Positions 5,963-64,000 of a stretch of 64,000 bases of DNA are shown piece by piece; the stretch's first letter is position 1; each line of letters opens with the position of its first letter. This DNA comes from Syncephalis fuscata S228. Taxonomy: Eukaryota; Fungi; Zoopagomycota. Below the pieces are notes generated by a model, which worked only from the letters and a program-made list of their open reading frames with translations, had not been told where the DNA came from and made no database searches. The DNA is taken from contig JAHLTZ010000051.1 in NCBI GenBank assembly GCA_025786725.1, positions 48,797-112,796 on the forward strand, in the 5' to 3' direction. The translations under genes and the position numbers were made by a program.

Positions 5963-6179
5963 ACGCTAGAATTAATAATGTTGAAACAAGCACCTTTATT
6001 GAATAGCAACTACAAATTACTAATGAAACGGCTATAAAAAAGAAGACAAGTCATTAAAGAATGTTTAATTTGTAATGAACGCCATTAGAAAAAACAAAGT
6101 GTGGAGCAAATAGAGAATGATTTTATTAATTAATAAATTTAATGAATTTTTAAAAAGAATTTATATGATAAAATTAGAA

Positions 6180-6560: not shown

Positions 6561-6715
6561 TATTTGGAAAATCTATGTTGAAAGTTGGAAGTTGCGTAAG
6601 AGTTGTGTGTCCCAGGAAAGAGTGCACTTTATCCATCTTGGTGGAAGTGCAATTCGTTCAGTTCATTGTCCACCAAATTTAATTTTTTTAATTTTGCGCA
6701 GTTATCAAATTCAGC

Positions 6716-7370
6716 TCAAATAAGGTTACATTCTTGGGCATAAGCTTCTTTTAGTCTAGTCAAATTAAAGCAAAACAGCTGTTCTATCATATCCATATAA
6801 CAATATAGCTTTTCTAGATTGGGAAAGTCTTTAACATTCAAAGCTCTAAGGTTATTGTTATTACAATAAAAAGTTTTCAATCCTTTGCAATTGGCTATCT
6901 CTAACTCTTTTAACCAATTAAAAAAAACATAGATGCGCTCTAATTTGGAAAAATTATTGAGTTTCAATGCTTCAATCTCGTTGTTGCAGCCTTGGATATT
7001 GACTAGATTAGGGCAATTCTCAATGATGACACCACTCAATCCGCAGCCATCAAATTTAACAACCTTTAAGTTGGGACAATTTTTGATGACTAGTGTTTTG
7101 CCCTTTCATCCTTTATCATTGTCGTCCAAGCATATACAGTCTCCCTCTTATCCATCAGATTCATTTTGAACAGCCTTTATGTTTTGATACTGCTCTTCTA
7201 TTTATACTACATTTCTCTTTTGGTTCTTAATGATATCAGTAACCTCTTTCAAATAAGCTTCATAAGACCTGCGAACTTCGCCGGAGATACTACTATCTCT
7301 TCAAATACCTTTCTAACTTTTTTGTAAATTTCGTTTTGTTCTACAATAATAATTGGTGATATGATACATA
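6716..7370 (-). pseudogene. Leucine-rich-repeat protein relic, intronless
   Basis: Repeats IKNCPNLKVV, IENCPNLVNI..NN.I..L, IANCKGLKTFYCNNNNLRAL, FPNLEKLYC; in-frame stops upstream of 7039. Confidence 0.75.
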
Positions 7371-8459
7371 ATCGTGAGCAATAGAAAGAGAGAGCAAATT
7401 GTCAACCAACGCTCTATCTATAATATAGTTTTAGCATAAAACTGATGCTGCAGTACCAAGAATGTGCGAAAACCGACAGCCATGCCTAAAGTTAACACTG
7501 TAAGGCGAATATTGACTCATTAAAACAGCGTGGAACGGAAAAAGAGCCAGAATGAAATGCTCGAAACTTGATTCTTGAACAATGTTAAATGTTCACTTTG
7601 TCTGGTTTTATTGCAGTGCGCCTCATATTATTAAAATACAGTAACAAGTATAAACATATGTAAATGTATAGAATATGAATAGAAATAATTTACATACTTT
7701 CTATTATTAGTAAAATCTAACTAGTTATATGGCAGTTCTCCATGTAGGCAAAAAATAGCATTTGAAATATGACAAAAAGTGTATAATTTAGTGTGGGAAA
7801 ATTAGAAAATTATAGTTACCAAATATGGTAATGGCACAAGTAAAAAACAGCTATTACAACTACACTCTGCAACCTGGCGCTTTAAATAATAAGCGTATAC
7901 TATCCATTGGCTTTTTAGTACTTTTATTCAATAAAATATGGTGCTCAACACCAGTTTAAACAAAAAATGTCTTTTATCGTTTCAGTCTTATTAACATTTG
8001 TGTAACACTTTGGAGTACTTGCCTCATCACGCCATTGGACGCACAGTCGGTCCAGTGCATTTTTCTTTTGCCGTCGCAGCTAGAGGGTAGCACAGCAGAT
8101 TTTTTGGCTATTGCTCATCAACGACCAATGGCAATACGACGATGTTTAGTAGAATGGGCAATAGAGATATGGCATTCTCATTGGGGCGATAGATAAAATA
8201 TGAAGATCATCTAGAAAAAAAACGGTGTATGTATCACATATTGTCTTGCCCACGTTGTTCCAACTGAACAAGAATAGAAGCACTTTTGCTACTAGTACCG
8301 CTTTTCCATTTTTCGCACGAACTCTCTATTTAACCGACGTGCTCGTGACCCCACGACCGTTGCAACGTTCGTTTCAACTTTTCCTATTGACACTCGTTTG
8401 CTATTGTAGTTCACACATACTACTGCTCTACTCCTCCATTACTACTACGCCTGACTCCT

Positions 8460-10615
8460 ATGAGTATACTCCTAGCCCGTTCGCTTGCACTTACTGGACG
8501 TCGAATTGGAGAACGCGCTGTGCGTGCTTCAGATATACGGGCATCGCCGCCATCGTTCCCAAGTACACATCGCTTATTGTGGACTGGCCAGCAACATCGT
8601 CGCATCCTACATACGGCCAACGAAACAGTTACGCAGCAACTAAGCCACCGTTCGAGCAATACTCGCCACTCGACTCGCCTATCAAGCACCGCCCTTTACG
8701 CTGCATTTGGTATCGGTGTAGCGGCTGTTCTACTTGATCCAGAGCCATTATTTTCAAATCGAACCGATGTTATGGCAGAAGCTGCAGATCCTAGCGACCA
8801 GGGGCGTCGTTCGGACGCCAATCTGGCGCTGATACACCGTACATTTGATGAGCGATCCACTGTATCGTTGCTTCGTTCACTACTCATTTATGAGATGTGT
8901 GCCTATCCACAGCTTGTCTCACTTGCCTCTAAGGTAATCAGCCTTGCCGAACGACTACCGCTACTCAATCTACCGGTACGGTTTGCGGTGCGTGAGACGG
9001 CCTTTCGCCAGTTCTGTGGCGGCGAAACCGTCGAAGAAACGCTACCTTTACTTATCCGTATGCACAGCCAAAATATTACAGGTATTTTGGATTTATCAAT
9101 TGAGGCGGACGTTGGCGAAGCCACACGTAATATGTCGGAAGATGCGGCAGCTACAGCTCGTCGCGAACCAGACACGTATTGGCAAACGAACCGACAAGGC
9201 CAAGCAGCGCGTGCTGACCATGTGATGAAGTTGGTGGAGCGCGGAATCCTTGCTGGCAAAGCGGCACCCGGCACGTTTTTCGCCGTTAAATGTACAGCAC
9301 TTGCTTCTGATCCTGAGGTGTTTGAGCGATGGAGCGCGGCACTTCGTAATGCTCGGCTAGAATTCGACGAACTTACCGGCCGACCCGTTGAAAAGTCGGC
9401 CGCTATCGATCCACCCGTTAATCCAAGCGAATTCGACGCTAAACAAATACGCCAGCAGCTAAATGAATATACTATCGATGAATCTGATTTCATTGCACTT
9501 GCTTGGCCTTATTTGTCGACAGATACCGGCTCTGATGTACCAATGAGTGCACCACAGACAGAGCGTCAATTAAAAATGCTTTTTCAGCAACTTGATAGTC
9601 AAAAACGTGGCCGATTAGACTGGGCCGATTATGTACAACTATTCAACAGTGAACGTCTACGCAGTGGACAAATACGTTTATTACCCGATGAAGCTGACAA
9701 CTGTAAAGGATTGAAGCCAGCCTCATCGGCTGACAAAATAAAACAAAACGAGATTTACTGCTGTCTGCATCCAGATACGCAGGTCGAAGTACTTGAAGCA
9801 CTTGATCGTCTTGAACGACTTTGCGATGCATCAATTGCCAAAGAATCGGGCGAAACTTCAGTTCGATTAATGATTGATGCGAACAAAGTTATTTACAGCC
9901 GGCCATTGCTTACCTTGCTCGTCAAGTGGCCATTAAATATAACAAGTCCGGCGTTGATACGCCGCAGATCTACGACACCTACCAGCTTTATCTTCGTCAT
10001 GGATTAAGACATCTTATTGAAGATATTGTTATGGCCGAACGTAATGGATATCGTTGGGCTGGAAAGCTTGTACGCGGTGCTTATGTGTCGACTGAACGTC
10101 GATATGCCGAGGAACAAGGTCAACCGAGTGCCATTTGGCCATCAAAGCCAGATACCGATCGTTCGTATGATGCGGGCGCGGCGGTTGCTATCGAGCTAGC
10201 CAGCAATGATGCAGCTCATGTTGTGGTGGCTACCCACAATAACATTTCGGTGGTCAAGGCAGTTCAGCTGATGGAAAAGCTAAATACTGATGGCAGTAGC
10301 CAATCTCTAAAGCAACGTATTCATTTCGCTCAGCTACTTGGCATGGGCGAATTGATTTCTGCACGTATTACCGAACAAGGCTACCAGTCGGCCAAGTATG
10401 TGCCTTATGGACCGGTCCAGGAAGTTGTGCCATATCTTTTACGTCGTGCCGAGGAGAATGGTGCGATGTTTGTCAGCCCAAGTGCCGCACCCATCGAAGA
10501 TACTGAGACGGAGAACTTTGGCGACAATGGCCCAGGTGAAGACCGTAGCGCAGTAATCCATGTTTTGCGCGAACGTCTAGGCTGGCGCCGCTGGGTCGGT
10601 CTGCGTCAAGTGTAA
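8460..10615 (+). CDS. PUT1: Mitochondrial proline dehydrogenase with EF-hand-like insert, intronless; one frameshift at about 9880
   Basis: FRQFCGGET, GILDLSIE, AVKCTAL, MIDA-EQSYLQPAI, TYQLYLR, KLVRGAY, ATHN, FAQLLGM, KYVPYGPV.EV.PYLLRRAEEN; Arg/Ser-rich presequence; DSQKRGRLDWADY. Confidence 0.93.
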
Positions 10616-20745: not shown

Positions 20746-20766
20746 GTTGATTTTATAGTTTATAGA

Positions 20767-22166
20767 ATTTTGCCATTAATGCGTAATATTCATGGACATT
20801 GCAAGCTTGTATTATTTGTTATTTTAATGCATATAAACATTATAGAAATGTATTATTTATTTCCAATAGCTATGGCTGCAGCAAATAATTCGCCTTCATC
20901 TGTACTCTTTAAAATACCGATAGAAAGCTAATTTACAAATTTAAGCGTAAATCACTGTGTTAATACTATAACAGCATGTAGTAGTATTAAAATAATGGGT
21001 CTAGTGTAATTATGCGGTAAAAGACAGCAACATTTGAATTAAATAATAACAGCAATAATCTAACTAATAAAGCATTACTAATATCGAGTATACTTTTATG
21101 TAGAATCAGGCAAACTGCATGATATGATGCATAAGTATGGGTATAACATATAGGTAGCTATTGGCAAACTATAGTGCAACTGTATTGCGCATTGATGCAA
21201 TGGTTGTAGCAATACGCCATTAAATATGTAAAATAGCAGTTTTTTACCAATCATGGCTGTATAGCTTAAATACAGCAAAATGATCACTAGATTCGAGTTC
21301 AGCATGCTAAGCTGAATCGTTTGGTATAAAATATAGAACAACAATTTTTGCAAAAAAGTTGACCAAAATGCAAATTACGTGTAAGTTAGCTAGTGGAATA
21401 TAATTCAGCTTATGTTACAATCTAATGTAAATAAAAATGCCAAGTAATCGAATGTTTTACAACTGCAAATATATCAGTGTTAAAACATATCGATACTTGC
21501 GCGGTGTATTTATATACATATATGTATATGTAAAACCACTAACTAACTTACACGTAATTTGCATTTTGGTCAACTTTTTTGCAAAAATTGTTGTTCTATA
21601 TTTTATACCAAACGATTCAGCTTAGCATGCTGAACTCGAATCTAGTGATCATTTTGCTGTATTTAAGCTATACAAGCCATGATTGGTAAAAAACTGCTAT
21701 TTTACATATTTAATGGCGTATTGCTACAACCATTGCATCAATGCGCAATACAGTTGCACTATAGTTTGCCAATAGCTACCTATATGTTATACCCATACTT
21801 ATGCATCATATCATGCAGTTTGCCTGATTCTACATAAAAGTATACTCGATATTAGTAATGCTTTATTAGTTAGATTATTGCTGTTATTATTTAATTCAAA
21901 TGTTGCTGTCTTTTACCGCATAATTACACTAGAGTCATTATTTTAATACTACTACATGCTGTTATAGTATTAACACAGTGATTTACGCTTAAATTTGTAA
22001 ATTAGCTTTCTATCGGTATTTTAAAGAGTACAGATGAAGGCGAATTATTTGCTGCAGCCATAGCTATTGGAAATAAATAATACATTTCTATAATGTTTAT
22101 ATGCATTAAAATAACAAATAATACAAGCTTGCAATGTCCATGAATATTACGCATTAATGGCAAAAT
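20767..22166. repeat. 1.4-kb near-perfect palindrome P1, copy 1
   Basis: Arms 20767-21396 and 21536-22166 are almost exact reverse complements; the centre is imperfectly self-complementary around 21470. Confidence 0.97.
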
Positions 22167-22518
22167 GCTTATACAACTGCCCTGATTATAAATAAACAAG
22201 CAGATATTTGCATTATAGGTATAGTTAGTGGGAAGTGAGGCATGTGTAACTAAATGGATTATTTTGAATGCCGGTCATAGCTATTGTAAACCAATAATAA
22301 TGTGCTTATATAAGCTCTTGTCTATAAGCAACTAAACTGATGTTTTGCATAATGTCATAATTGGTTAAGAATGATATGTATGTGCAACTAAAGTAGCTAT
22401 AAACAAGTAAACTTTGTTTTCAAATGTTACTCATATTTATCAAAAGCAATAAACATTATTAACTGTATAGCACATTTACAGCTATTAGCATTGTCAATAC
22501 CACTATTATTAATTAATA

Positions 22519-23459
22519 GTGGCTATTTAGTGACCAGAAGTAATGTCGCATAATATGGTCTACCAATAATACTGCTTATGCTTACTTCACATTACCATTG
22601 ATGCTGATAAAATAGGCGATATACATGGCTAGCACATTGTTTATAACACGCATAGTCAACGATTTATCAGTGTAGGCTATTGCGTTATTATATAGACACT
22701 GTAAATATATACAATACCTACCACTAATATATTTGCTAATAATTGATACACTTTTTATTAGTATTTGTGTAGGCTTGTACTGTCAAATAGCAAAGGAGAA
22801 ATTATTACCGCTTTTTTATTAATCAAGTAATTTTCACCAATTTTTAATTCCATCATTAATATATCTAGGAATACATGATGTCATTCGTTATGACCGCATA
22901 GTATTGGTGTATTGACACATATAAGTCATGTATTTTTTTAAAATTATTGGAAGTTGCCACAAATAAAAACAGTAATATTATTATTAAAAATACCATTTTT
23001 AAGTACTTTTTAACTGTTAGTACTTTTTATAATTTTTCAATAATACATGACTTATATGTGTCAATACACCAATACTATGCGGTCATAACGAATGACATCA
23101 TGTATTCTAGCTAAGTTACTGATGGAATTAAAAATTGGTGAAAATTACTTGATTAATAAAAAAGCGGTAATAATTTTTTCCTTTGCTGTTTTGACAGTAC
23201 AAGCCTACACAAATACTAATAAAAAAGTGTATCAATTATTAGCAAATATATTAGTGGTAGGTATTGTATATATTTACAGTGTCTATATAATAGCGCAATA
23301 GCCTACACTCATAAACCGTTGACTATGCGTGTTATAAACAATGTGCTAGCCATGTATATTGCCTATTTTATCAGCATCAATGGTAATGTGAAGTAAGCAT
23401 AAGCAACATTATTGATAGGCCATATTATGCGACATTACTTCTGGTTACTAAATAGCCAC
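22519..23459. repeat. Inverted repeat P2, copy 1 (arms about 415 bp, loop 22935-23041)
   Basis: GTGGCTATTTAGTGACCAGAAGTAATGTCGC.. pairs with ..GCGACATTACTTCTGGTTACTAAATAGCCAC; inner ends GTCATGTATT / AATACATGAC. Confidence 0.95.
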
Positions 23460-27739: not shown

Positions 27740-29800
27740 TTTATTGAACATGGAACTGAGTGGTGAATGATGTCAGGGTCCATAATACTCATTATCATAG
27801 ATTGACTATTCAGTATGTATATATCCTCTATCTATCCACATCATTTCCATTGTATGCTCATACTACTATATATCACTACATCATACACTAAATACATTCT
27901 ATTTGTTATAGTTTTCAACACACGCCACTCATTTCACTTATTGCATCACATGCACTATAACTTCAACACTAATATTCATACATCCTCTTGTTTTATTTTG
28001 CCTTATATCATTGTATGTTTAAATGGCTGTTTATTTCTCGTTAGCTGTATTGTCACAGCTTAACTCTGGTTATTTCTTTACTCATGATTCACAAACACCC
28101 AAGTATAATAGCTTCCTCACCACCATTCATGCTTTTCTACTACTTTCTAGTGCTAATATGTCTTAATTGTATGAAACGGGCCAGTGATGAGCTGGTACAG
28201 CTATCATATTAAATAAAGTTAGCTATTGTAAGATGTATATTGTTTATTGTAGAATAAGCATCTATTAATCTACAGCCAATTGAATATAAGGACAAATTAC
28301 AGGCACATATACAATGTGGCTGTAGATCGTGTCGATTACTTTACTATCATTACTTTAATCACATTAAATAGACTTAACCAAGTATAAGTTGGTATAAAGC
28401 TATTCTTAGATGTGTTGCATTAGCATATAAAGTATAAGCCATTAGTATTCATCATAATTATTAGTTTAAAGCTAATCCCAATTAATTATGCTACAGGCCA
28501 TATAAATGATCGGCATTGTTTGAAATAAAGTCATAATTGATACTATCAAATAAACAGAGCTACTTGGTATGTTATATGTAAAGTTTAGTGTAAATCATTT
28601 TTACGCTTAATTGGTTAAATCGTGTAACCTAGATTTAATCCATCAGTTTATCGCACTGTAAAGATCTTGCTGATATTAGTGTTTGGTTAGTATGGTGGAT
28701 AGTAGCAAAGATTCTTTATACAATAGGTGAGCAGAGTGCTTTTTAGACAAGAAGATAAATGGCTTATCGCATACTAAACTAACAGGTACGTATACTAAGA
28801 TTCCTACTAGAGTGATGATGGCCATTTATACGGAAGACTACGATAATTACGTAGTATATTGGTCATATATGGTTTCAGGTGACTATGTTTTATTACATTT
28901 TCTGCAATTGCCGCAGTATATAAGCGACTTTACCACTCCTCTAAACCAGCATTGCCTTTTATCTTCTCTTTCTACTCTTTACCACTGGACATACGCTACA
29001 CTCATTCGCTCTTACTGTCATTAGTTGTTTAATATGCTTTGCACTCGCTGGACGTCTAATGATTACAGGATCGCTGCTGCTCATTATTTGGCATATTTAA
29101 GATAAGTAAACTAGTGTGTGCGCAGTGTAATACAGTCACTCTGTTAGCTATGTTGACATCGAGAGATATATAGTCACTAGACACTATATGATTTTGCGGA
29201 TGCATTCCAGCATGCTGCGAACGGTGTTAGACCACACTTAGCTGATTAGACTTCTGAATAGCGAATATGGTTATTGCTATGTGCTTGCCTGTTGTAATTG
29301 CATTGATGGTATTTGGGGGTATATGCAATATATAGTCTCTGCTTGGAGATATCACCTGTGCTAAATTCAATATGGAAGTGGTGATAAAGCTATGTTGTTT
29401 ATACAGCTTCCGCTATCTGGAACTTGCATGAAAGTGCATAGGATTTATACAATACAACGTATACAAACTGCCTCCATGATCATGCAGGGAATAGTAGTGA
29501 TGGGTGCAGTTGGTTGAATAGTTTATGCGCGCTAGTAGTCTTGGTCATGCTCACTGCAGAAGGCAAAGGAACTTGTGTTTTGTGGCTATGACCAACAGCT
29601 GTTCTGAATTCATATCAGTGTAATTGCTCAACAAACATTATTGCGGCGGTTAATTTGCATGCTAGTTTACTTATTTTATTTTAACTGATATAGATCCAAA
29701 AAATAGTTAAATTCGGCAAGAACAAGGCCACAATGCGCCACTAGTTACTTGGTTTGTATTATTATATTAGTGTTATGTAATTTTGTCAACTAAATAAAGG
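27740..29800 (+). repeat. Long M-family unit (M terminus plus about 2 kb body)
   Basis: Direct similarity to 61710-64000 (28960-29080 vs 63497-63615) and inverted similarity to 53350-55780 (29685-29765 vs 53385-53467). Confidence 0.85.
28990..29660 (+). pseudogene. Decayed secreted EGF-like-repeat protein gene inside the M unit
   Basis: TATATAAG, then a pyrimidine-rich leader, then a signal-like RYTHSLLLSLVV-ICFALAG; Cys fragments CIPAC-ANGV, CNCIDGIWG, GKGTCV; the paralog at 63530-63850 has CSCAF-GYG, CTPAC-VEGAC, CVCLRGY. Confidence 0.5.
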
Positions 29801-29914
29801 TAACGTTTTCTTTTGCAAATATTAACATATTACAATCAATTGTATTCAATACAACTACATCATACTAAATATTTAAATAAAATACCAGTGCTTTATTTTG
29901 CTAATTAAATTAAA

Positions 29915-30830
29915 TATTTCTATTACTGCTATTTAATAATTTATTAATATTTAATGTGATTTAGTGGTCAAATGATTGTATTTGATAATATTTATACATT
30001 TAAGTTAAACTTTCTTGCTATTGAACATGACGATGGGTGGTGAATGATGTCAGACATCAAATACTCATAATTGTAGATTTATTATCCAGTATGTATATAT
30101 CCTTTATTCACCTATATCATTCTCATTATATCCCACACTACTATACATCACTTTATAATATAATAAACAGTCCATTTGCTATAAATCTCAAGTATATATA
30201 GACTAACGAGTAAATGAACTGAGCTTTATCAATAATACAGCTAGAACCAGACGGACAGCGACTTTAGTCGGTTCGTAGCTCTTGTGTAATAAATCAATAA
30301 AGTTGTATAATGAATATCCAAACTAAAGTGACGATTAGCAGTGTCAAAGTTGTTGAAAATATATGCATGACCAATGAGCAGAATTAGTCAAGATTTATTA
30401 ATAATAAAGCTAGAACAAACATAAAAGCAGTTCTGGATAGAGGAAGACTAGGCGAGTATAGAATAGTATATAAAATGGTAAATGTACGGTGAGAAAGCAT
30501 ATAAAACGATGTCAAAGCTATAGTGTGTATAGCATAATGAGTGGTGTGAATAAAGTATATTGAAACATATAAACAATAGAATGTGTCTAGTATGTTATAA
30601 AATGGTATATATCATTATAGAATAAAATAGAATGATATAGGTGAATAAAGTATATGTATACTGAATATATGCATACTGGATAATAAATCTACATTGATGA
30701 GTATTTGATGATTGATGTCATTCACCATCAACTAGCATGTTCAATAGATTAGATGTTGTTAAATGTAGCCATTTGACCATTGGATCATGTTAAATGGCAA
30801 TAAATAAGACAGTAATAAATAAATCATTGG
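29915..30830. mobile_element. MITE-like unit bounded by inward-facing M termini
   Basis: M forward at about 29950-30200 and M reverse at about 30340-30795; no ORF; target-site duplication not identified. Confidence 0.6.
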
Positions 30831-45696: not shown

Positions 45697-48130
45697 TTTT
45701 AATGCATATAAACATTATAGAAATGTATTATTTATTTCCAATAGCTATGGCTGCAGCAAATAATTCGCCTTCATCTGTACTCTTTAAAATACGATAGAAA
45801 GCTAATTTACAAATTTAAGCGTAAATCACTGTGTTAATACTATAACAGCATGTAGTAGTATTAAAATAATGGCTCTAGTGTAATTATGCGGTAAAAGACA
45901 GCAACATTTGAATTAAATAATAACAGCAATAATCTAACTAATAAAGCATTACTAATATCGAGTATACTTTGTGTAAAATCAGGCAAACTGTATGATATGA
46001 TGCATAAGTATGCATATAACATATAGGTAGCTATTGGCAAACTATAGTGCAACTGTATTGCGCATTGATGCAATGGTTGTAGCAATACGCCATTAAATAT
46101 GTAAAATAGCAGTTTTTTACCAATCATGGCTGTATAGCTTAAATACAGCAAAATGATCACTAGATTCGAGTTCAGCATGCTAAGCTGAATCGTTTGGTAT
46201 AAAATATAGAACAACAATTTTTGCAAAAAAAGTTGACCAAAATGCAGATTACGTGTAAGTTAGCTAGTGGAAATATAATTCAGCTTTATGGTTTTACAAA
46301 TCTAATAGTAAAATAAAAAATTGCACCAAGTAAATCCGAAGTGTTTTGCAACACTGCACCAATCATAATAACAAGTTAGTATAAACAAATATCGAGACAT
46401 TGCAGCGATGTATGTCATATAATATATGTATATGTAAAACCGCTAACTAACTTGCACGCAATTTGCACTTTTGGTCAACTTTTTTTGCAAAAATTGTTGT
46501 TCTATATTTTATACCAAACGATTCAGCTTAGCATGCTGAACTCGAATCTAGTGATCATTTTGCTGTATTTAAGCTATACAGCCATGATTGGTAAAAAACT
46601 GCTATTTTACATATTTAATGGCGTATTGCTACAACCATTGCATCAATGCGCAATACAGTTGCACTATAGTTTGCCAATAGCTACCTATATGTTATATGCA
46701 TACTTATGCATCATATCATACAGTTTGCCTGATTTTACACAAAGTATACTCGATATTAGTAATGCTTTATTAGTTAGATTATTGCTGTTATTATTTAATT
46801 CAAATGTTGCTGTCTTTTACCGCATAATTACACTAGAGCCATTATTTTAATACTACTACATGCTGTTATAGTATTAACACAGTGATTTACGCTTAAATTT
46901 GTAAATTAGCTTTCTATCGTATTTTAAAGAGTACAGATGAAGGCGAATTATTTGCTGCAGCCATAGCTATTGGAAATAAATAATACATTTCTATAATGTT
47001 TATATGCATTAAATAACAAATAATACAAGCTTGCAATGTCCATGAATATTACGCATTAATGGCAAAATGCTTATACAACTGCCTGATTATAAATAAACAA
47101 GCAGATATTTGCATTATAGGTATAGTTAGTGGGAAGTGAGGCATGTGTAACTAAATGGATTATTTTGAATGCGGTCATAGCTATTGTAAACCAATAATAA
47201 TGTGCTTATATAAGCTCTTGTCTATAAGCAACTAACTGATGTTTTGCATAATGTCATAATTGGTTAAGAATGATATGTATGTGCAACTAAAGTAGCTATA
47301 AACAAGTAAACTTTGTTTTTAAATGTTACTCATATTTATCAAAAGCAATAAACATTATTAACTGTATAGCACATTTACAGCTATTAGCATTGTCAATACC
47401 ACTATTATTAATTAATAGTGGCTATTTAGTGACCAGAAGTAATGTCGCATAATATGGTCTACCAATAATACTGCTTATGCTTACTTCACATTACCATTGA
47501 TGCTGATAAAATAGGCGATATACATGGCTAGCACATTGTTTATAACACGCATAGTCAACGTTTATCAGTGTAGGCTATTGCGTTATTGTATAGACACTGT
47601 AAATATATACAATACCTACCACTAATATATTTGCTAATAATTGATACACTTTTTATTAGTATTTGTGTAGGCTTGTACTGTCAAATAGCAAAGGAGAAAT
47701 TATTACCGCTTTTTTATTAATCAAGTAATTTTCACCAATTTTTAATTCCATCATTAATTATCTAGAATACATGATGTCATTCATTATGACCGCATAGTAT
47801 TGATATATTGACACATATAAGTCATTTATTATTGAAAAATTATAAAAAGTACTAACAGTTAAAAAGTACTTAAAATGATATTTTAATAATAATATTGCTG
47901 TTTTTATTTGTGGCAACTTCCAATAATTCTTTAATGTCATCTATATGCGTCGATGTGTTAATACTAAGCGGCTATAATGAATGGATTACGTATTTATAGA
48001 TACATTACTGATGATAATAAATATTGATGAAAATTGTTTGATTAATAAAAAAGCAGCAACAACTCCTTCTTTGCCACTTTGATAATAAAAGCATATGCAA
48101 ATACTAATAAAAAATATATAATGAATTAAT
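45697..48130. repeat. Second copy of the P1+P2 double-palindrome module
   Basis: P1 arms about 45697-46270 and 46440-47012; near-identical direct repeat of about 20822-22930 up to about 47825; P2 loop inverted; P2 right arm 47940-48130 diverged. Confidence 0.95.
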
Positions 48131-50991: not shown

Positions 50992-52599
50992 AATAAACTA
51001 CTTTTGCTGTAGCAAATGCACAACATGCAATTAACACCATTTAAGCAATATACAAAACGCAAGCTCTGCCACAGTACAACAAGCCAAACTATCCGTTCAA
51101 GTGGATGAATGGTAATACGTAAGTGCTAAGGATGCATTGCGCAGCCAAACAAACAAATATGCACAACGCAAAGTGCTACGCAACAAACCAACTTGGCACA
51201 GCGACTATAGTATCATTCACTATCCAGTGCAAACGCAACTACAAAACGCAACACTTGCTTACTTTTAAGATACTTTGTAAACTATAATAATGTAGTGAGT
51301 GAGTAAACGAAGTTGTGGAAGAAAATAAACAGAAAGCGTTATAGAGCACTACAGATTGATCTTGCGCGGCTTTTACACAGTAAATAACTAAACTATTTTA
51401 CATTTATACCCAGTAGTTTGTATTGTCGTTTTTTGTATTGGGTATTTGTATATACAACATGTAGTATCACTATCGTCTTGTGCAGCTCAATACGATCTCA
51501 CTAGCCAAAACAGGCCTGCATCGGAATGAATATCAAATGGTCTGTGTACGCCTTGCTAAACCGGTAAATAGTCGATGAACTGGATGGCGTGGTCACAACA
51601 ACAAATAGACACTTAATACGTGATCTTGTGTTTACTTTTCATAAATACGCCACCACATGATTATGTGTATTAATAACGCGTGTAAACGACTGAAACAATA
51701 GCAAATCATTTATACAATACATGTAGCTGTAATAACATATAATGGTATTTATTCAAGTCACTTGTATATATTCCAATATTCATAATATACGGTGTATTTC
51801 TATTTATACGATTACTTCATTACTTATTTGATTGATTTATATTCCAGTATATCTGTATCTTTTAACACCATAAATAATGTCAATGCTTTATACAGCACGT
51901 TTATATTGAAACTTGGATTTAAAGGTGATTTGTTGATAGGTGCGTTGTAATCACCGTAGTCTTGTTACTGATGCAGATACATATCAGTTAGCTTATTGTA
52001 GCCAGTTCATTACTACAACAGTTTGTAATAGCTTGCTGTTTTACATTATCAATAGCTGATGGTTTCTGCTATATGTAAAATACATGCATGGATGTGTATA
52101 TCAGTGTACTCGGTAGGTATGGTTGTAGTTTACTAGACATACTAGACACAGTATTGCACAAGTACTTGGCAGAATACGACAAATAGTAATGTATATATAT
52201 ATATCTAATTGTACACGTAGCTATACTCGGCAACATTATAAGTAAAAGCTGCACCGCTTCAAGTGCTGCAGCATAAATCACAAGTTGTCTGGCGATCAGT
52301 AATCTATTGCGCACCAAGGACTTAGCTGTTTGAACGCGCTGACATCCGTATCGGTTGATACTATGCCAAAACATTCAGCTTGCTTAATAATCTCAAATGC
52401 CCAAGCATATCTATAATTTACTGACATTGTATTCTAAACAACATATGTTTGTTACGCTATGTATACTGTAGTAATATGCAAATTGCACTTAACTGTCGCT
52501 GTAATGTAGTAGAATCAATAATCAACGTGCATCGCGCAGTATTATTACCGATTCTATTGCTACTGTGTCTGTGCTTTATTATTATGCTTGAATAGCTAT

Positions 52600-53215
52600 A
52601 AAACACTGTGGTTACTTTTCAATAAACAATATAGGATAATTATAATACTTATATATATGCTACATCCTTGGCCAACACTCATCCTGCAATAGCTAGATTT
52701 ACTTTAAATAATACATGATCTTGATAAAGTTACTATGCATACACTCAATAAGCAATAGAAGCAGTAGGAGTTGAATTTTTAACAAATACAGCTAGCGACA
52801 AGCAAGCAACTTTTACCAATAATGCTAGCTATTAGACTATGCAACGATATAAGACAAAACAAAACAAAACAAATGTGTGTAAATAGTAGTATTAACATTA
52901 TAGCGTGTATATATATGCATGAACAAATGAGCGAGATAAACAAAAATAATAACGAGCAGAACTAACATCAGACGGCAAAACAGTTGCAAATAAATCGTAA
53001 TTACTATAATATAGAATAATATATAGTAGTATGCGATAATAGACGAATGATACAAGTAAATGGTGGATATAAGCGTACTGGATAATAAATCTATGATAAT
53101 AAACATTTTAAACTTTGATTCACGCACCACTCGTTATTATATTCAACAGAGCAATTGTTTAGTTCAACCACATAAATGCATCAAATTTAATCATTTGCCT
53201 TAAAAGCACATTCAA
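52600..53215 (-). repeat. M-family unit in tandem with the 53350-55780 unit
   Basis: TACTGGATAATAAATCTATGATAAT at about 53076; body matches the reverse complement of 27950-28260. Confidence 0.75.
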
Positions 53216-53470
53216 TGGCTTAATAAATTGTTTATTATCAGTGTAATAACAATAGCAAAAACAACTAGTACTATTATTAAATGGGAAGATGTCTGTATTT
53301 ATATGAACGCAACTAATAGTAGTATGTTAATAAATAAGAAATGCTACATTTATTTATTTAAACAAAGAAATACATAAATAATGATATACTAATACAAACT
53401 GGATGACTGTATAGCATATTGTGGCCCTGTTCTTGCCAAATCTAAATATCTCTTAAATCTATATCTATTG

Positions 53471-55983
53471 AAGAGGGTCAGTAAACGAGATGAGCCATAT
53501 GTGCCAATGATGTTTGCTGCTTGACTACACTGCAATAAGTAGTGGTTGTCCAAACAACATTTGCTCTGCACCATCAGATATCAGATATCTTCAAGCGCAA
53601 ACCTTATGTCGCCTCAACAGCCAGATACTCCGCAAGGTAACCTCGCAAACAAACACATGGTAAGCGTACCAATGTTACTATACAAAAGACCAATCAACTA
53701 TGTGCAGACAAGCGCCTTCTACAGCATGCTGGAGTACACACTGCGTGATATATAGCTTCTAGAACACTACATATCCAGCGCTCCATAGCCAAAAGGCACA
53801 ACTGCATCGCACCACCCACGCCCGTTTACCGACCTTAGTACATATAGCAGCAACCAGCAGCGATCTTGTAATCATTAGACGTCTAGCGAGTGCAAAGCAT
53901 ATTGGACAACAAATGGCAGTAAGAGCGAATGAGTGTAGCGTATATCGAGTGGTAAAGAGTAGAAAGAGAAGATAAAGGTGCAATGTTGGTTTGGAGGAGC
54001 GGTAAAGCCAGCTTATATACTGTGATAGTTGTGGAAAATGTCGTAATAAAACATGAGTCATCTAAAACCGTCTATGACCAATGTACTACATAATTGCTTT
54101 TAGTCTTCAGTATAAGCAAATACAGCTGTTTCAATAGGATCTTCAGTGCATGTAACTATTAGTGTAATATGTAGTAAACCATGTGTTTTCTTGTACACCT
54201 ATTGTAAGAGTCTTTATTGCTATCATTATTTTGTCTGAACATTAATATTGGTAAGCTCTTTACAACGCGATAAACTGATGGATTAAATCTGGATTACACG
54301 GCTTAACCGATTAAGCGTATAAATGATATATGCTAAACTTTACAAATAACATAGTAAGTCCGTTTATTTGGCAATATCAAGTATGGCTTTATTTTAAACA
54401 ATGCTGATCATCTAGGCAGCATTCAAAGCAGCTAAATGAGATCAGCTTCAAGCTTGTAGTTACAGTAAATACCAATGGCTTATATGTTGAATACTAATGC
54501 AATCCATCTAATAAGATCTTAGGGCAAATTATTTTTGGCCAAGTTTATTATTGCTTTTAATTGCGTCGAATAGAGTAACCAGCACTGTCTACGGCCACAT
54601 CGTAAATATACGTACACTTTGTCCTTATGCTCAAGTAGCTATAGCACAATACATGATTACTCTGCAATAAGCTATACGACACTTTTAGACCACGTATACA
54701 CAACACCCATAGCGAATATCTATTTTGTAATAACGAGCTTTATTTGGTGTAATAGCTTATACCAGTTCATCACTGGCTCGTCTCATACCATTGCAACATA
54801 TCGGTGCTGGAAAACAGTAAAAAGAGCATTAGCGGTGTAAGAAGGTTATTATACTTGCGCGTTTGTGTGGAATAAGTAAAAGAAGTGCTCAGAGCTAAAC
54901 TTTGCAACAAACAGCTAACAAGAAACGTATAGCTTCTGCAAATAAAGCATAGCCATTAAGCATAAAATAATATAGAGCAAATAAATACCAAAAGTAATTG
55001 TATGATAGCAGCATTAAAGCTATAGTGCGCCTTGGGAAGGAATGACTAAGCGAAACAAGTCAAACTTGTCAATATTAAAGCTGGCGTCAAGCTGACAGTA
55101 GTTATTGATAGCGCATAGTAACTATACAATACAATAGCATAACAGCCATCAGTTATGCTAATTAAAAGACAACTAGCTTTGTTAAAGCTATCGAGCATAT
55201 ATGCATGAGCAGATGAGCAACTTGCGTAAACTTTTATAATAACAATGCTAGAATCAAACACACAACGGTAATAGCTAGCGCGTATTTACTGAATAATAAA
55301 ATAATATACAAATTAAAAAGTATGGACAGCAGTGGTATAGTTACTAAGCATATATGCATGATCAATGGCCGACATTAGTCGAACTTTATAAATAATAAAG
55401 CTAGAACAAAAATAAAAGTAGCATTGGATAAAGGAAGAATAGGCGAGTATAGAATGACATATGAAGTAATAAATATACGTAAGAAATCATAAAAGTGGTG
55501 TTAAAGTTACAGTGCATATAGTGTGATGAGCGGAGAGAGTAAAGTTTATTGCCGCATATAATAATTAGAATGTGTCTAGTATATCATATAACGGTATATA
55601 GTAGTGTGGAGCGAAATAGAAATGATATAGGTGAATAGAGTATATATGCGTACTGAGTATATGCATACTGGATAATGGATTTATGATGATGGGTATTTGA
55701 TGATTGATGTCATTCATCATCTACCATCATGTCCAATAAATTAAGTGTTATTAAATATAATCATTTAACCACCAAACAAACAGTATGATTAAACGATTTG
55801 AGCATTGAATAAAACTCACCACCCGTCCCATGTTCGATAGAACAAATATCTAGTTTAATTACACGAATACTGTTATACTTACTCATTTGTTCCCAAATTA
55901 CATTATATAGTTAATAAAATGGTATAGAATAGTTTATGACAACATACATAAAATATGTTAATCACGTTGTATTGAAATTTAAT
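53471..55983 (-). repeat. Left arm of a near-identical long inverted repeat (two stacked M termini plus the M body)
   Basis: Reverse complement of 61510-64000; identical 100-aa ORF translations at 53759-54061(-) and 63409-63711(+). Confidence 0.97.
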
Positions 55984-57428
55984 GAATAACATGGTCCACA
56001 CACTTTTATATTACAACTAAAAGGAATAGCACACAGCACACATTTATTAGTATAAGCAATACAGCTAACTAAATAAATTACTGATATTGCTGCTAATTGG
56101 ATGCTATATTTGTAGTTGTACTAGCATGCTAGCTTATTATTCAAAAAGTGGCATTGTGACATTACATTGTCTACAGATGCTATAGAATATAACTAAAAAT
56201 AGCTTTATTGTATTAATAAAGATATGGACCATGGCAAAAAGAAAAGTCTAGAATCCTAGTTTACATATACATCTCCAGTACAAGTAAATAGAGTCAAAAC
56301 AGTATCGAGTAAAACGCATAATTTGCGTTGGCTCAAGTTTCCAGTAGTGATCATATTAGATTGCTGAACAGTTAGTAATATATTGATTCTTACGACCCGT
56401 GCATGTTAGTACAGTATGCATAATCGCAATTTCAGCAGACATTCGCTAATGTATGTTATTTCGTATTAGTAAGTGTTCAGTAAGATACAATAGTATTTAC
56501 CTTTATAATGGTCACTACGTCGTCTTGATAAATTTAAATAAATATCTATAGCATTCAACAGTACACATGCAATCATAGCAAAACAACTGCATCAGGAATG
56601 GCCTATTTGATGTATGTTGACGACCTAGACTCCCACCCATCAGCGTCGGTCTATACGGTCTTCAGCTATCATAATCATGATGTGCCGTGGTTGCTGTTTT
56701 ACCATTGCTTATAACACAAGCAATATCAGAAAACTATTCATCCAGGCGACATACATGACTAGATAAACAGAAACGAACAACCAATAACGCTGAGCCCATA
56801 CCCACGTCTAGGCCACCTATAACAAATAAGAAATCTAAAATGCAATAACAGCAGTGCAATAGCACACTGTTGCGATATTATACAGCCAACACAACTACAC
56901 CACCATTCTAGACAGTTAAAGACAACAGCTTAGATGGCACAAACAGTATAGCACCTTAAACCAAAGTTGTGCCAATTAAGGCGCTTTAACTGCTAAAACA
57001 ACAATACATTATGACAACTGCTTAACATAACCCACAAGCAAGGAATAGTGATATGTATATACGCACACCTGAGTGTATATACAAGCACCACCATACAATA
57101 CACATAGTGTTCTACAGCATAGATTAGGTTGTTTGACGTTGTACCATCGATCTTCTCAGGTTATAACGAGTGAGTACCTTCTAGACAGCTTAAAGTATCC
57201 CGAGCAGTTGCATATTGTATGGTTCACAGCAAGCAGTTTACAGTGTGCCATATAAATATTTGAATAATACTTAGCATTCCAGTCTACGAATGTACAGAAT
57301 GACGGAATGTGTTAGTAATTAGTTAAAGAATAGTGTAGAAATAAAAGGCGTAGTTGAGGTTATGGATTCAGTGAGTAATGCAAGTGCTTTATATAGGCCA
57401 TTGTATGTATTAGTGCGAAAGCAGGCAT

Positions 57429-58337
57429 TTAATACCATCCAATGAATTGAATCCATCGGTCACAATGAGACAGACAAAAAAGCGGAATAAACCAGCTTAA
57501 AGAAGGGAATGCTGTGTGATATCGTGTAGCGTACATGGCTAACTCACTAAGAAAGCACGTCATTGCAAGACAGAGTGCCACTTTATCCAATTGAACCGTG
57601 CGATGGTTCGGCGAAACAAAAAATGTTCGAATGCGGATGTAGAGCTTACTGGAAAATTGTTCAGTGTGTGTGGACAGGCAATGCCGATACGAGTTGCCTA
57701 TCATGGTAGTACAATCGCGGAACTAACTGAATCAGGGTAGCTGCTTTTGAATCGGGGTAACACCTTTTTTAATGAGCGTGCATATACTAGTGCCAGCAAA
57801 TATACAAGCTAATTAGAAAGATTAGCACACTGTGTGTATTGTGTATTAGAATTTAAAAACAATTATGCTATTTATAACATCATCAGTTGATGAATATGCA
57901 TGATCAACTTAAAATTAATTAATACCTAACATATTAACCGGTATTTAGTAACCTTAAATAAAACCAAACACTTTGTTTTTCATAAACCAAATTTCTGGGG
58001 TTTTTTCAAAGTTGCGTTCCCGAGTACGTGTAACCGTCCATTTACGAACAGTTTCATCCAGCTGACGACTTTCTTTGTCAAAAAGCCGCTGTTCAAATCG
58101 GAGTTTAAATTGCACCAATGTTGCAACATCGTCCATGTTCATAATCAATTTATCGTACACCATCAATAGTATATGTTTATATAATTTCATATAAGCATTC
58201 TGCCACATTGTGGCTACAAAATGAGACTAATAAACACTATTTAATATTCAAATGAGCTGTTGTCTCGTATTGCTTATATCTGCAACATTTTCATAAAATT
58301 GTTTGGTATTCAAACTCCGATACAAATAATTCATCAT
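57429..58337 (-). pseudogene. Possible small or decayed gene divergent from kinase 2, no family recognised
   Basis: Coding-like ORF 57954-58208 (..FEQRLFDKESRQLDETVRKW..) preceded by a TTTTGTAG acceptor; further GC-richer block at 57430-57790. Confidence 0.3.
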
Positions 58338-58867
58338 TGGTGCACAGATGATACTTAGAATGTTAAGACCGGAAGTGGGTAAATCGCGCTAGTGTATGTG
58401 TGCGCACTGTCCGTATCCTAATCGGTTGATGGCGTTATCGCGGACAAAATCGCAAGTTCAGCTACAGTAGCTGGTGGTGTATGTTTCATATACTAGCCAA
58501 TTAAAAATTTTAAAATACATCAATGCCCTCAATCAGAGTTACGCAAATATACTCTGAATTACATGCAGTATTTGCCAGTGTAGCGATATTATCAAAAGTA
58601 AAGTGTGTGCGTCAGTTGAAACCATGTAATACTATATAAGCTTTTTATTTTGTGTAAAGACGCTGTACTTGCTTTTATCATATTATACTTACATTCTGCC
58701 TTTATCTTGCAGTATTTAAACAATTCTGAATATCTAAACTTATATATCATGGACAGCCCAAGTAATTCACTTAGCTGTAGCATACTACTTGTCTTTAAAT
58801 GATTCCCCTCCTTTCATTACCACCTTTGTTTTACCACCTTAGCTAAAACTGATACACCTCCGCTAAA

Positions 58868-61409
58868 ATGCTGTTGCTTGTGAGTTATCTGTAGCCGCTC
58901 AAGCAACAGCAACAGCACAACTGTCTACTCTTGCTTCACCACCTATTGCGTCCAACAACTCAGTAGGAGAGATTTACGAAAGACTCCCTACTGCATGGGC
59001 AGAAATGAGTGAAGCAGAGAAGGCAGAAACAGTAGGCTGGGTTGAGGTATTTGGCGTTGAAGGCATGGGTAAGTAAACACATTATTAATGAATAGTTAAA
59101 TTAACTATATATCTAAAGAGTTCCTGTTAAAACGGAACAAGCCGTTTACCCTTTCTCAAGATAACAAGTAAGCTATACAGCGCATAATAATGAGCTTTCA
59201 TTGCTATATTATGGTTTGCTATTGTATAGCAAATGTATACATTCAAGCTGCTTCTGGTTTGATTCGATACAACACTAATATATAACATTCTACAACTTTT
59301 ACTGATACAATGATTTATGTTATTTAGCACAGAAGAAGGTCAGGGGCCAGCAAGACTGAATACTTTGCATATTCATGGTAGTAGCATATAAATTTGTATT
59401 AAATAGTAACAACAATTATAACACATATTTAGGAGGAAATACCATGAATTAAGAGTAAGTAATTGCTATGCTAATCAATATTAGTACTAAATATGCTATT
59501 AGAATTTGATGGTCAACAACATCATTGGTAAATACAGTCATTAATAATTATACACAGCGCTGACTATGTATTTAGTGGATGGTAGGGAAATTCGGCAAGG
59601 AGCTACGGCTATTATAAAAAATAACAGCTACGTCCGGCTTGATGAAAATAATAGTTTTATTAATCTACAATAAACAAGGCTAACCATTACTAATACTAGT
59701 ACTTATGGTATACAAGATCAATAAGCTGGAATTGAGAATTAGCGACAAGAGTTGTGATTTCGGCACAGTAAGCTAATAGTATTTAGCTATAATAATTTAT
59801 GACAACTAACACAATGCTAGGTCGTCGGCATCAAATATGCTGTAACAGAGCAGTTGCTTGGCAGGTGAGTATTTGTCTAATTTAAACCATATTGTTTATA
59901 ACTTAGTTTAGTGGCTCTTTTGGTGACGTCTATTACAGGGAAACACGCGGTAATAAGACGCCCATTGCCGTTAAGATCTGCAATAAGAAGAAAATTATGA
60001 GCGCGATAGAAAATAACATTTTAAATGGTTTCAATGAAAAAAGGATGTAATCACCACTGCACAAAGCCACTCGAACATAATCAAGCTAGTTGATGCATGC
60101 GATACGGAAATGCACAACTACTTGATGTTTGAGTATGCAGCTGGTGGCGACCTGTTCGATTATTGCGTGCGCTATGGTCCGCTATCCGAACAGGAAGCCA
60201 AGCATATTTTCAAACAAGTGCTCGAAGGAGTCAAGGTAAGCAACAACTATATTTACTGATTTGTTACTAACTCTAAACCAGCATTTGCATAGTAAAGGCA
60301 TCGTACATTGTGGTAAATTAAAGATGGTATTTATTTACATAACTAACAAAACTATTGTTGTTGCAATGGCCATCGTTTAGATTTGAAGGTAATTAGCTAT
60401 GTTAATATATGTTAGTTTAATTCCAACCATGCACTAGCCAGAAAATGTCCTGGTTCGGCGTCCAGTCAAGTATCCGTCTATTTTAATTACGGATTTCGGC
60501 ACAGCGCGTGAACTTAACGCAGAAGCGCCCATGCTTGATAATATGTGTGGTACCACTAGCTACATGGCACGGATGTCATTCTTAGATCCAAGTTTGGAAA
60601 TCAGCTGGTTAAAAATATAGAAAAGTATGATGCTGATCTGGCAACTATGTTGAATGACAATTCCATGAGCAAGGCTATGGAAAAGAAGCCGACCAATGGA
60701 GTCTTGGTCTTATATTGCATTTTATGCTCACACGTAAGTATTTGCAGATTTGGTAGTTTTGTTAACTTATTGTTTGAATCTAGGCACTCTTCCATTTGAA
60801 ATTAAAGTCAATAACACATGTTTGATCCATATCATCAATATATTCAGCAATACACTAGATTTGACGATAGCTGGAATGGCATATCAACTGAAGGTAAGTA
60901 GCTTTATTCTAAAGTTACAAAAGAAACTAATGCAATTTATAGCGCAAAACTTAATTGGTGGTCTTTTAGCTATCGACCGTAACTTGCGCCTGACAGCCGA
61001 ACAGGCTTTAGAAAGTGCCTGGTTTACTGAATTGTCAGAAGAATTCAGTGAGTCAGAAGTGAGTCAAAGCGTACAAGAAGAAGAGGAAGAAGAAAAAGAA
61101 GTAGAAATAGAAGAAGAAGAAGAAGAAGAAGAACAAAAAGAAGAAATAAAAGCTGATAATGCAACAGAAGATACAACCACGAAGGTCGAACAACAAGAAG
61201 AGGTGGCTATAAAAGATGAAGCATCAGCCAAAGAAAAAGAAATAGTAACAAGCGACGCCGAAAAGAAAGTAAGCGAGAACTTAACTGCAACAAACGCGGA
61301 AGATAAAGCAGCCCAAGATCATGCTGTTGTCCCTATGGATCAACATGACGTTAAACGGTCCCACTCAACAAGTAGCGACCAACGTCCTGCCAAAAAATCA
61401 AAACTGTAA
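58868..61409 (+). CDS. Chk2/Mek1/Dun1-like kinase, paralog of kinase 1, with Glu-rich tail; several 1-bp frameshifts (kinase 2)
   Basis: LPTAW..GWVEVFG matches kinase 1 LPACW..GWVEVYG; LG.GSFGDV, IAVKI, HSNIIKL, EYAAGGDLFD, HC-DLK-PEN, DFGTA, CGTTSYMA, GYGKEADQWSLG, RLTAEQALESAWF; shared intron positions. Confidence 0.85.
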
Positions 61410-61509
61410 GTGTTTATTGACATGATCTGTTACACGTACTAATTCAACAATTGTCAGGCAATATTTTGTAAATAGCTTGTTCTACTCAGTATTCATATGT
61501 TAAATAAAT

Positions 61510-64000
61510 ATTAAATTTCAATACAACGTGATTAGCATATTTTATGTATGTTGTCATAAACTATTCTATACCATTTTATTAACTATATAATGTAATTTGG
61601 GAACAAATGAGTAAGTATAACAGTATTCGTGTAATTAAACTAGATATTTGTTCTATCGAACATGGACGGGTGGTGAGTTTTATTCAATGCTCAAATCGTT
61701 TAATCATACTGTTTGTTTGGTGGTTAAATGATTATATTTAATAACACTTAATTTATTGGACATGATGGTAGATGATGAATGACATCAATCATCAAATACC
61801 CATCATCATAAATCCATTATCCAGTATGCATATACTCAGTACGCATATATACTCTATTCACCTATATCATTTCTATTTCGCTCCACACTACTATATACCG
61901 TTATATGATATACTAGACACTTCTAATTATTATATGCAGCAATAAACTTTACTCTCTCCGCTCATCACACTATATGCACTGTAACTTTAACACCACTTTT
62001 ATGATTTCTTACGTATATTTATTACTTCATATGCATTCTATACTCGCCTATTCTTCCTTTATCCAATGCTACTTTTATTTTTGTTCTAGCTTTATTATTT
62101 ATAAAGTTCGACTAATGTCGGCCATTGATCATGCATATATGCTTAGTAACTATACCACTGCTGTCCATACTTTTTAATTTGTATATTATTTTATTATTCA
62201 GTAAATACGCGCTAGCTATTACCGTTGTGTGTTTGGTTCTAGCATTATTATAAAAGTTTACGCAAGTTGCTCATCTGCTCATGCATATATGCTCGATAGC
62301 TTTAACAAAGCTAGTTGCTTTTAATTAGCATAACTGATAGCTGTTATGCTATTTATTGTACAGTTACTATGCGCATCAATAACTACTGTCAGCTTGACGC
62401 CAGCTTTAATATTGACAAGTTTGACTTGTTTCGCTTAGTCATTCCTTCCCAAGGCGCACTATAGCTTTAATGCTGCTATCATACAATTACTTTTGGTATT
62501 TATTTGCTCTATATTATTGTATGCTTAATGGCTATGCTTTATTTGCAGAAGCTATACGTTTCTTGTTAGCTGTTTGTTGCAAAGTTTAGCTCTGAGCACT
62601 TCTTTTACTTATTACACAAACGCGCAAGTATAATAACCTTCTTACACCGCTAATGCTCTTTTTACTGTTTTCCAGCACCGATATGTTGCAATGGTATGAG
62701 ACGAGCCATTGATGAACTGGTATAAGCTATTACACCAAATAAAGCTTGTTATTACAAAATAGATATTCGCTATGGGTGTGTGTATACGTGGTTTAAAAGT
62801 GTCGTATAGCTTATTGCAGAGTAGTCATGTATTGTGCTATAGCTACTTGAGCATAAGGACAAAGTGTACGTATATTTACGATGTGGCCGTAGACAGTGCT
62901 GGTTACTCTATTCGACGCAATTAAAAGCAATAATAAACTTGGCCAAAAATTTGCCCTAAGATTTATTAGATGGATTGCATTAGTATTCAACATATAAGCC
63001 ATTGGTATTTACTGTAACTACAAGCTTGAAACTGGTCCCATTTAGCTGCTTTGAATGCTGCCTAGATGATCAGCATTGTTTAAAATAAAGCCATACTTGA
63101 TATTGCCAAATAAACAAACTTACTATGTTATTTTTAAAGTTTAGCATATATCATTTATACGCTTAATCGGTTAAGCCGTGTAATCAGATTTAATCCATCA
63201 GTTATGCGTTGTAAAGAGCTTACCAATATTAATGTTCAGACAAGTAATGATAGCAATAAAGACTTTTACAATAGGTGTACAAGAAAACACATGGTTTACT
63301 ACATATTACACTAATAGTTACATGCACTGAAGATCCTATTGAAAAGCTGTATTTGTTTATACTGAGACTAAAGCAATTATGTAGTACATTGGTCATAGAC
63401 GGTTTTAGATGACTCATGTTTTATTACGACATTTTCCACAACTATCACAGTATATAAGCTGGCTTTACCGCTCCTCCAAACCAACATTGCACCTTTATCT
63501 TCTCTTTCTACTCTTTACCACTCGATATACGCTACACTCATTCGCTCTTACTGCCATTTGTTGTCCAATATGCTTTGCACTCGCTAGACGTCTAATGATT
63601 ACAAGATCACTGCTGGTTGCTGCTATATGTACTAAGGTCGGTAAACGGGCGTGGGTGGTGCGATGCAGTTGTGCCTTTTGGCTATGGAGCGCTGGATATG
63701 TAGTGTTCTAGAAGCTATATATCACGCAGTGTGTACTCCAGCATGCTGTAGAAGGCGCTTGTCTGCACATAGTTGATTGGTCTTTTGGTATAGTAACATT
63801 GGTACGCTTACCATGTGTTTGTTTGCGAGGTTACCTTGCGGAGTATCTGGCTGTTGAGGCGACATAAGGTTTGCGCTTGAAGATATCTGATATCTGATGG
63901 TGCAGAGCAAATGTTGTTTGGACAACACTACTTATTGCAGTGTAGTCAAGCAGCAAACATCATTGGCACATGTGGCTCATCTCGTTTACTGACCCTCTTA
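61510..64000 (+). repeat. Right arm of the long inverted repeat, runs off the window
   Basis: Starts ATTAAATTTCAATACAACGTGATT, the reverse complement of sequence ending at 55983; the match continues to the last bases (to 53471). Confidence 0.97.

Follow-up and report, generated by a model that had tools for sequence, protein, structure and literature searches.

We analyzed an inverted repeat that encloses a protein kinase gene in the fungus Syncephalis fuscata S228. The repeat occupies positions 53471-64000 of a 64,000-nucleotide stretch, called the window throughout, which corresponds to positions 48797-112796 of contig JAHLTZ010000051.1 (C319); coordinates are those of the window unless another contig is named. 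As one joint explanation, we consider it probable that the structure belongs to a family of seven or more cassettes that arose by segmental duplication and each carry a CAMK-type kinase gene inside an old inverted repeat; that it is a structural palindrome, neither a mobile element nor a demonstrated switch; and that its right arm, judging from allele comparisons, is a collapsed consensus of the cassette's own right arm and that of a sister cassette on contig C182.

The inverted repeat is plain in the assembly. Comparison of the window with itself by the Basic Local Alignment Search Tool (BLAST) paired 53471-55983 with 63999-61510 in inverted orientation at 98.17% identity over 2514 columns, and a repeat search of the window resolved the arms into a series of blocks with 97-100% complementarity. 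Counting substitutions alone, arm identity is 98.9%, and the enclosed spacer is 5526 bp long. The kinase stop codon lies at 61407-61409, an AATAAA follows at 61503-61508, and the right arm begins at 61510. An earlier sequence-only reading of this DNA had described such a near-identical repeat, with a right arm starting just past an AATAAA about 100 bp after the kinase stop, and had called a further copy of the repeat elsewhere in the window far more diverged; these descriptions were borne out, the further copy (about 28034-30779) being only 70-78% alike. The features of the structure are as follows.

51395-53011, no strand assigned: left flank co-duplicated with the arm (95.8% identity to C46 over 51395-55780; 95.9% identity to C182 over 51395-60622)
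53012-54098, no strand assigned: conserved outer module, a member of a very abundantly transcribed RNA family, 94-96% alike in all family copies
53012-55917, minus strand: full dispersed unit of about 2.9 kb inside the left arm, with matches at 86-90% in C216, C26, C313, C334 and C363
53471-55983, minus strand: left arm, to the extent that it can be paired with the right arm
55984-61509, plus strand: inter-arm spacer, body of the multi-copy kinase cassette
55984-57638, no strand assigned: part of the spacer from another dispersed and tandem repeat family, with many 71-85% matches and tandem runs in C329, C7 and C335
58867-61409, plus strand: spliced CAMK-group protein kinase gene, start provisional, from Pfam matches of exon pieces, structural relatives and RNA joints
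60233-60983, plus strand: zone 98-99% alike in all cassette copies by sliding identity
61503-61508, plus strand: AATAAA directly before the right arm, read from the sequence
61510-64000, plus strand: right arm, cut by the contig end and probably a blended consensus, from comparison of its alleles with the left arm and C182

The spacer had been called unique, which holds within the window but not in the genome, where at least six other copies exist. Copies of 55984-61509 were found in C182 (96% identity), C134 and C3 (both 94%) and C337 (93%), with partial copies in C235 and C330 (92%); more distant kinase cassettes on C190, C130, C370, C197 and C305 lay outside the family comparison. In all six of these relatives the inner ends of the repeat lie no more than about 16 bp from the positions equivalent to those in the window. 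The sequence-only reading had proposed checking whether other paralogs of the kinase also sit inside inverted repeats, and in C134, C235 and C3 they do. The arms of the compared cassettes are these.

C319 (window): arms at least 2.5 kb, 98.2% alike as assembled; the contig end cuts the right arm
C134: arms at least 2.17 kb, 99.2% alike; the contig start cuts the left arm
C235: arms 642 bp, 95.8% alike; in the interior of a 313-kb contig
C3: arms 312 bp, 87% alike
C330: arms not paired; the right arm is 82% alike to the window arm over 383 bp

Comparison of C330 with itself found no repeat of 250 bp or more. Between cassettes, arm homology is limited to the inner 300-750 bp. The window and C134 have inner arms that are about 80% alike and spacers that are about 94% alike, while the two arms of each cassette are about 99% alike, and farther out than 750 bp no relationship remains between the arms of C134 and those of the window. 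The whole arm-spacer-arm core, 55233-62254, recurs in C134 with limits that are symmetric at 750 and 745 bp; the homology limits vary with the pair of copies compared (55233, 55650, 55525 and 55584). The left third of the spacer is itself a member of another dispersed and tandem repeat family. In the highly similar zone 60233-60983 the assembly graph appears to collapse, and both C182 and C337 stop within it, at the equivalent of window position 60622.

To examine the history of the arms, a maximum likelihood tree was built from the inner 400 bp of the arms of seven cassette copies. Both window arms grouped with the left arm of C182 (support 100/97), both C134 arms grouped with the left arm of C337 (100/100), and the two C235 arms were mutual nearest neighbors, while the arms of C3 and those of C330 were diverged. 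Inner arms therefore cluster by cassette rather than by side for window/C182, C134/C337 and C235, with one window arm and one C134 arm lying at contig ends. The suggestion that the arms are recent or actively homogenized accordingly gained support at the level of the family. Because a repeat with common boundaries is most simply ancestral and the arms nevertheless group by cassette, they would have been homogenized after the cassettes were duplicated, and since the outer arm sequences differ, the repeat seems to have been extended outward separately in different cassettes. As read from these comparisons, the shared ancestral repeat measures only about 300-750 bp. We therefore propose a model in which an old inverted repeat with its inner ends at two fixed points (here 55983 and 61510) encloses the kinase gene. 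Intrachromosomal gene conversion between the arms would maintain their likeness, and conversion, or repair synthesis running past the end of homology, would push the repeat outward into different flanks in each cassette. In the window copy, the repeat is at least 2.5 kb long and includes a copy of the dispersed 2.9-kb unit, which bears a transcribed RNA module.

The outer limit of the repeat is set by the assembly and not by biology, since C319 is 112796 bases long and window base 64000 is the contig end; the left limit at 53471 is merely the mirror of that base. Members of the dispersed family match the left arm without a break from 55917 out to 53012, giving a repeated unit of about 2.9 kb, and the left arm is interior to the contig with ordinary flanking DNA on either side. 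Extending the search for the outer ends was thus informative on the left, where the unit reaches 53012, but not on the right, where the outer end lies beyond the end of C319.

The right arm as assembled carries an unusual pattern of differences. In a three-way alignment of the right arm, the left arm and the C182 arm, the latter two differ at 40 substitution columns (1.6% of the arm). At these columns the right arm agrees with C182 in 21 cases and with the left arm in nine, has a gap in the remaining 10 (eight events), and never shows a third base. Left-type and C182-type states alternate within a few bases of each other, for example at 62353-62374, and overall the right arm has 15 substitutions relative to the C182 arm and 28 relative to the left arm. 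It also has 15 private deletion events, eight of which fall on the 40 columns where the left and C182 arms disagree. The chance of this coincidence is below 1e-10 by count; a column-wise hypergeometric calculation, which includes gaps shared with one copy, gives 5e-21. No repair process known to us removes a base at mismatched positions, whereas gaps at such positions are what a consensus caller produces when given reads from two templates. Because the deletions sit exactly at the discordant sites, we read the mosaic of the right arm as a consensus artefact.

Short reads point in the same direction. The read evidence consists of public Logan short-read contigs from runs X1, X3 and X4, none of which is long enough to span an arm. 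These contigs restore a C after 62373 and after 63925, remove an extra base at 63787, and break at the other indels of the right arm. The scattered 1-bp indels that the sequence-only reading had listed between the arms are therefore real features of the assembly, but most of them are private deletions of the right arm that no short-read contig supports. Private short deletions are also frequent in the spacers of the window cassette (20) and C182 (35), compared with two in C134, three in C3 and none in C337. C182 and C337 both end within the common zone, as noted above. The assembly lacks the right end of the C182 cassette, and reads from there would have gone into the polishing of the window's right arm. 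If each sister cassette has near-identical arms, such a blend would show only left-type or C182-type bases, with gaps where the two clash. On this evidence both sister cassettes would have long right arms, and their true arm identity is probably above 99.5%, a value deduced from the blend rather than measured. The apparent 1.8% divergence and the 1-bp indels would then largely be artefacts, and because the right arm is a mixed consensus, the figure of 98% is not a measure of the age of the arms. As a separate observation, differences between the close copies are mostly transitions (the left and C182 arms differ by 46 of these and 13 transversions), and the read tables have the same bias.

Several points weigh against the explanation we favor. 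The left junction is covered by an X3 contig, but no read or contig specific to the window cassette bridges the right junction. The link from the kinase to the right arm crosses about 1.3 kb that is near-identical in all cassettes, and the long-read assembly is the only evidence that carries it across. Contig C304 begins exactly one base past the end of C319 in the coordinates of the repeat unit, with the other ("86% group") subtype of that unit; its first 5000 bases (C304:1-5000) hold a unit, then 1.4 kb of spacer and a second unit in inverted orientation. C319 and C304 are either neighbors that were cut apart or the product of a chimeric contig split at that point. Gene conversion, for its part, is deduced from the shape of a tree in one assembly and was not observed, and in both of the clearest long, near-identical arm pairs (window and C134) one of the arms abuts the end of a contig. 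Two contigs were considered as proof of the right junction and rejected: an X4 contig covering 61371-61561, whose continuation carries alleles of paralogous cassettes, and an exact X1 contig across the junction, whose sequence is identical in C134. The X3 contig that covers the left junction has a loose end at 61510, which continues as the reverse complement of 55984-56013.

These points bear most directly on the possibility that the palindrome is not as drawn, either because the long right arm belongs to C182 alone or because it was mis-joined out of the collapsed 3' zone of the kinase gene. Such an error would fit the position of the right arm at a contig end, its greater closeness to the C182 arm than to the left arm, the absence of its private features from the reads, the break of C182 and C337 at 60622 inside the 98-99% common zone, and junction read support that is not cassette-specific. 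However, bases derived specifically in the left arm (62198, 62356 and 62357) are finely mixed with C182-type bases, which fits two collapsed right arms. The right arm is of the window type from about 61560 onward, being only about 80% like arms of the C134 type; therefore, long reads joining the 3' end of the kinase gene to a window-type arm must have existed, and window-type left arms occur in only two cassettes, those of the window and C182. In addition, every fully assembled paralog has a right arm at the same junction, and long inverted repeats of the same unit were assembled within the 150-kb contig C313. We therefore regard a strict assembly artefact as rather unlikely, and it is likely that the window cassette truly has a long right arm.

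The sequence-only reading had also entertained a fold-back element or an invertible cassette. A fold-back transposon, or one with long terminal inverted repeats (TIRs), would carry the kinase as cargo and spread the kinase family by transposition; long terminal inverted repeats flanking a gene, a core that recurs in C134 with near-symmetric limits and copies on several contigs are all features that such an element would have. However, Pfam identified no transposase, integrase or recombinase in the frames of the arms and spacer, the eight such frames that were searched giving only sub-threshold noise, and Tandem Repeats Finder (TRF) detected no tandem sub-repeat arrays in the arms. The homology limits differ for each pair of copies, and the repeat runs past them into cassette-specific sequence, so that there are no common termini. 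In C182, C46 and C334 the copy of the arm comes with a copy of its flank, 51395-53011, as expected of segmental duplication. The proposal of a fold-back element with cargo was thus not supported, and we consider transposition very improbable. As regards inversion, a pair of inverted arms about 99% alike over at least 2.5 kb offers ample substrate for homologous recombination, and plastid inverted repeats and the yeast 2-micron plasmid do flip by recombination between their arms. Inversion of the kinase spacer is therefore plausible in principle. That both orientations coexist, whether by a programmed process or not, nevertheless seems quite unlikely to us: no recombinase was found in Pfam scans of frames between 53.4 and 61.4 kb, although genes split by introns could escape such scans; the spacer of C182 has the same orientation relative to its left flank as that of the window; and with symmetric arms the flanks of the gene move along with it, so that a flip would bring no obvious change in expression. 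No inverted isomer emerged when C337 was compared with C134, but as homology simply ends 1052 bp into the arm, this comparison carries no weight either way. A more far-reaching version of the model, in which the old short inverted repeat acted as a seed, with arm repair keeping the arms identical, extending them outward, capturing hyper-expressed RNA genes, linking palindromes and flipping the kinase segment, is also distinctly unlikely in our estimate. If true, it would amount to a recombination engine that both expands and reshuffles the kinase family.

The structural palindrome that we favor belongs to a known kind, the palindrome maintained by gene conversion. The best-known examples come from organelles and the sex chromosomes of animals. 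The human and ape Y palindromes P1-P8 and the X palindromes likewise have kilobase-scale arms, about 99% or more alike, around a spacer that is not duplicated; their arms also carry a transcribed multi-copy gene, and the arms are concerted within a palindrome and diverged between related palindromes. In contrast, the arms here measure 2.5-4 kb rather than 10 kb to 1.5 Mb, the spacer and not the arms holds the protein-coding gene, the host belongs to an early-diverging fungal lineage, and conversion is deduced from a single assembly. The long repeat sequences of Candida albicans and the plastid and 2-micron inverted repeats are comparable as recombining inverted repeats of kilobase size, and by analogy inversion might be expected as a by-product; unlike those systems, no isomers were observed here (in short-read contigs only) and no dedicated recombinase was found. 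Fold-back (FB-type) and long-TIR cargo transposons resemble the structure in their long inverted termini around a cargo and their several copies, but here sub-repeats, a transposase and common termini are lacking and the flanks are co-duplicated. A literature search by species name found no work on these repeats. A family of kinase-gene palindromes in such an early-diverging fungus, itself a parasite of other fungi, would demonstrate these dynamics in a small genome (about 29 Mb), and its variously extended arms would offer a natural series for the study of palindrome growth. There is also a lesson of method, in that two copies can be blended into one palindrome arm where a contig ends; the arm identity, the 1-bp indels and the kinase frameshifts seen here are not to be taken as biology.

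The kinase gene itself was assigned from exon pieces that were searched singly. Pfam identified the protein kinase domain (Pkinase, PF00069) in the pieces 60038-60232 (E = 1.5e-12) and 60438-60569 (E = 3.3e-6), and the best solved relatives are MARK, AMPK and CaMKII, all of the CAMK group. Run X3 is taken to be RNA because GT..AG joints are present in its contigs, and these joints support nine introns, with the reservation that the contigs may stem from paralogs that are 95-99% alike.

59068-59117, plus strand: intron
59168-59327, plus strand: intron
59527-59574, plus strand: intron
59654-59699, plus strand: intron
59768-59820, plus strand: intron
59863-59909, plus strand: intron
60234-60279, plus strand: intron
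60734-60783, plus strand: intron
60892-60940, plus strand: intron

Single-base deletions occur in or near the kinase exons after 59345, 59363, 60036, 60569, 60656 and 60859, and all are filled by short-read or RNA contigs. The last four are exon frameshifts that the reads undo, and correction at 60569 restores the frame of the A-P-D motif. The frameshifts are thus most likely errors of the assembly consensus and not signs of a pseudogene. At its 3' end, the gene has a (GAA)n run at 61075-61145 that encodes a poly-Glu tail; identity among the cassettes falls to 62-79% over 60983-61232, and the tail therefore varies in length. The stop codon overlaps a consensus 5' splice site, GTAAGT (61404-61412). 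Low RNA depth returns at 61601-62000 in the right arm, and either transcriptional read-through or the use of another final exon could account for it.

Within the arm unit, the outermost 1.1 kb stands out for its conservation: this module is 94-96% alike across family copies, whereas the whole unit is only about 86% alike. Summed X3 contig depth reached 6000-9000 over 63401-64000, the mirror region in the right arm, compared with 10-20 over the kinase gene and zero over 62001-63400. The module family is hugely expressed. However, at 63656, 63687, 63691 and 63701 all of the deep RNA signal carries alleles of the other subtype (the C216 type), and the RNA gene copies that belong to the window may not be expressed. 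The module matched nothing in Rfam, either at the gathering score in the whole window or with E values up to 1 over 52800-56100, and a transfer RNA scan gave no hits. Folding of 53400-54090 on both strands showed no unusual stability (z scores of -0.46 and +1.0). A candidate frame of 100 amino acids lies inside the hyper-expressed module at 53759-54061 on the minus strand, with its mirror at 63409-63711 on the plus strand. Variable columns fall at codon position 3 in 12 of 20 cases, and most family copies have ACG in place of ATG together with a stop at codon 93. The frame has no relative in Pfam, and in the ESM Atlas its best score was 0.81, with low recognition and no family. A TTTTAG stands immediately before it, and the frame may therefore be an exon.

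Beyond the kinase cassettes, a genome-wide search (29.4 Mb) scored at least 40 matches to the arm. Its closest relatives are the C182 arm (99%, on a 12.7-kb contig), the window's left arm (98%) and C46 (97%). Many other copies, with identities near 86%, make up palindromes of their own, in C216, C26, C313, C220, C206, C225 and C159, in which the ends equivalent to 53012 point toward each other across about 1.3-1.4 kb of spacer. The units of the window are oriented oppositely, with their 55917 ends toward the kinase. Three of these two-unit palindromes, in C216, C26 and C313, were retrieved; they have arms of 3.4-4.2 kb that are 97.4-98.6% alike and spacers of about 1.3 kb, and the loci are about 98% alike.

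C216:1-8843: two-unit RNA-gene palindrome
C26:14990-23145: two-unit RNA-gene palindrome, arms 3.4 kb, 98.6% alike
C313:14243-23995: two-unit RNA-gene palindrome, arms 4.2 kb, 97.4% alike, well within a 150-kb contig

The C216 and C313 palindromes border a short-period satellite, with many shifted matches, some of them offset by 22 bases or multiples of 22. Finally, the window holds another palindrome, perfect over 545 nucleotides with a loop of 226 nucleotides (45698-46242 and 46469-47013), and a second copy of this region (45698-47013), 92% alike, is present at 20764-23250.

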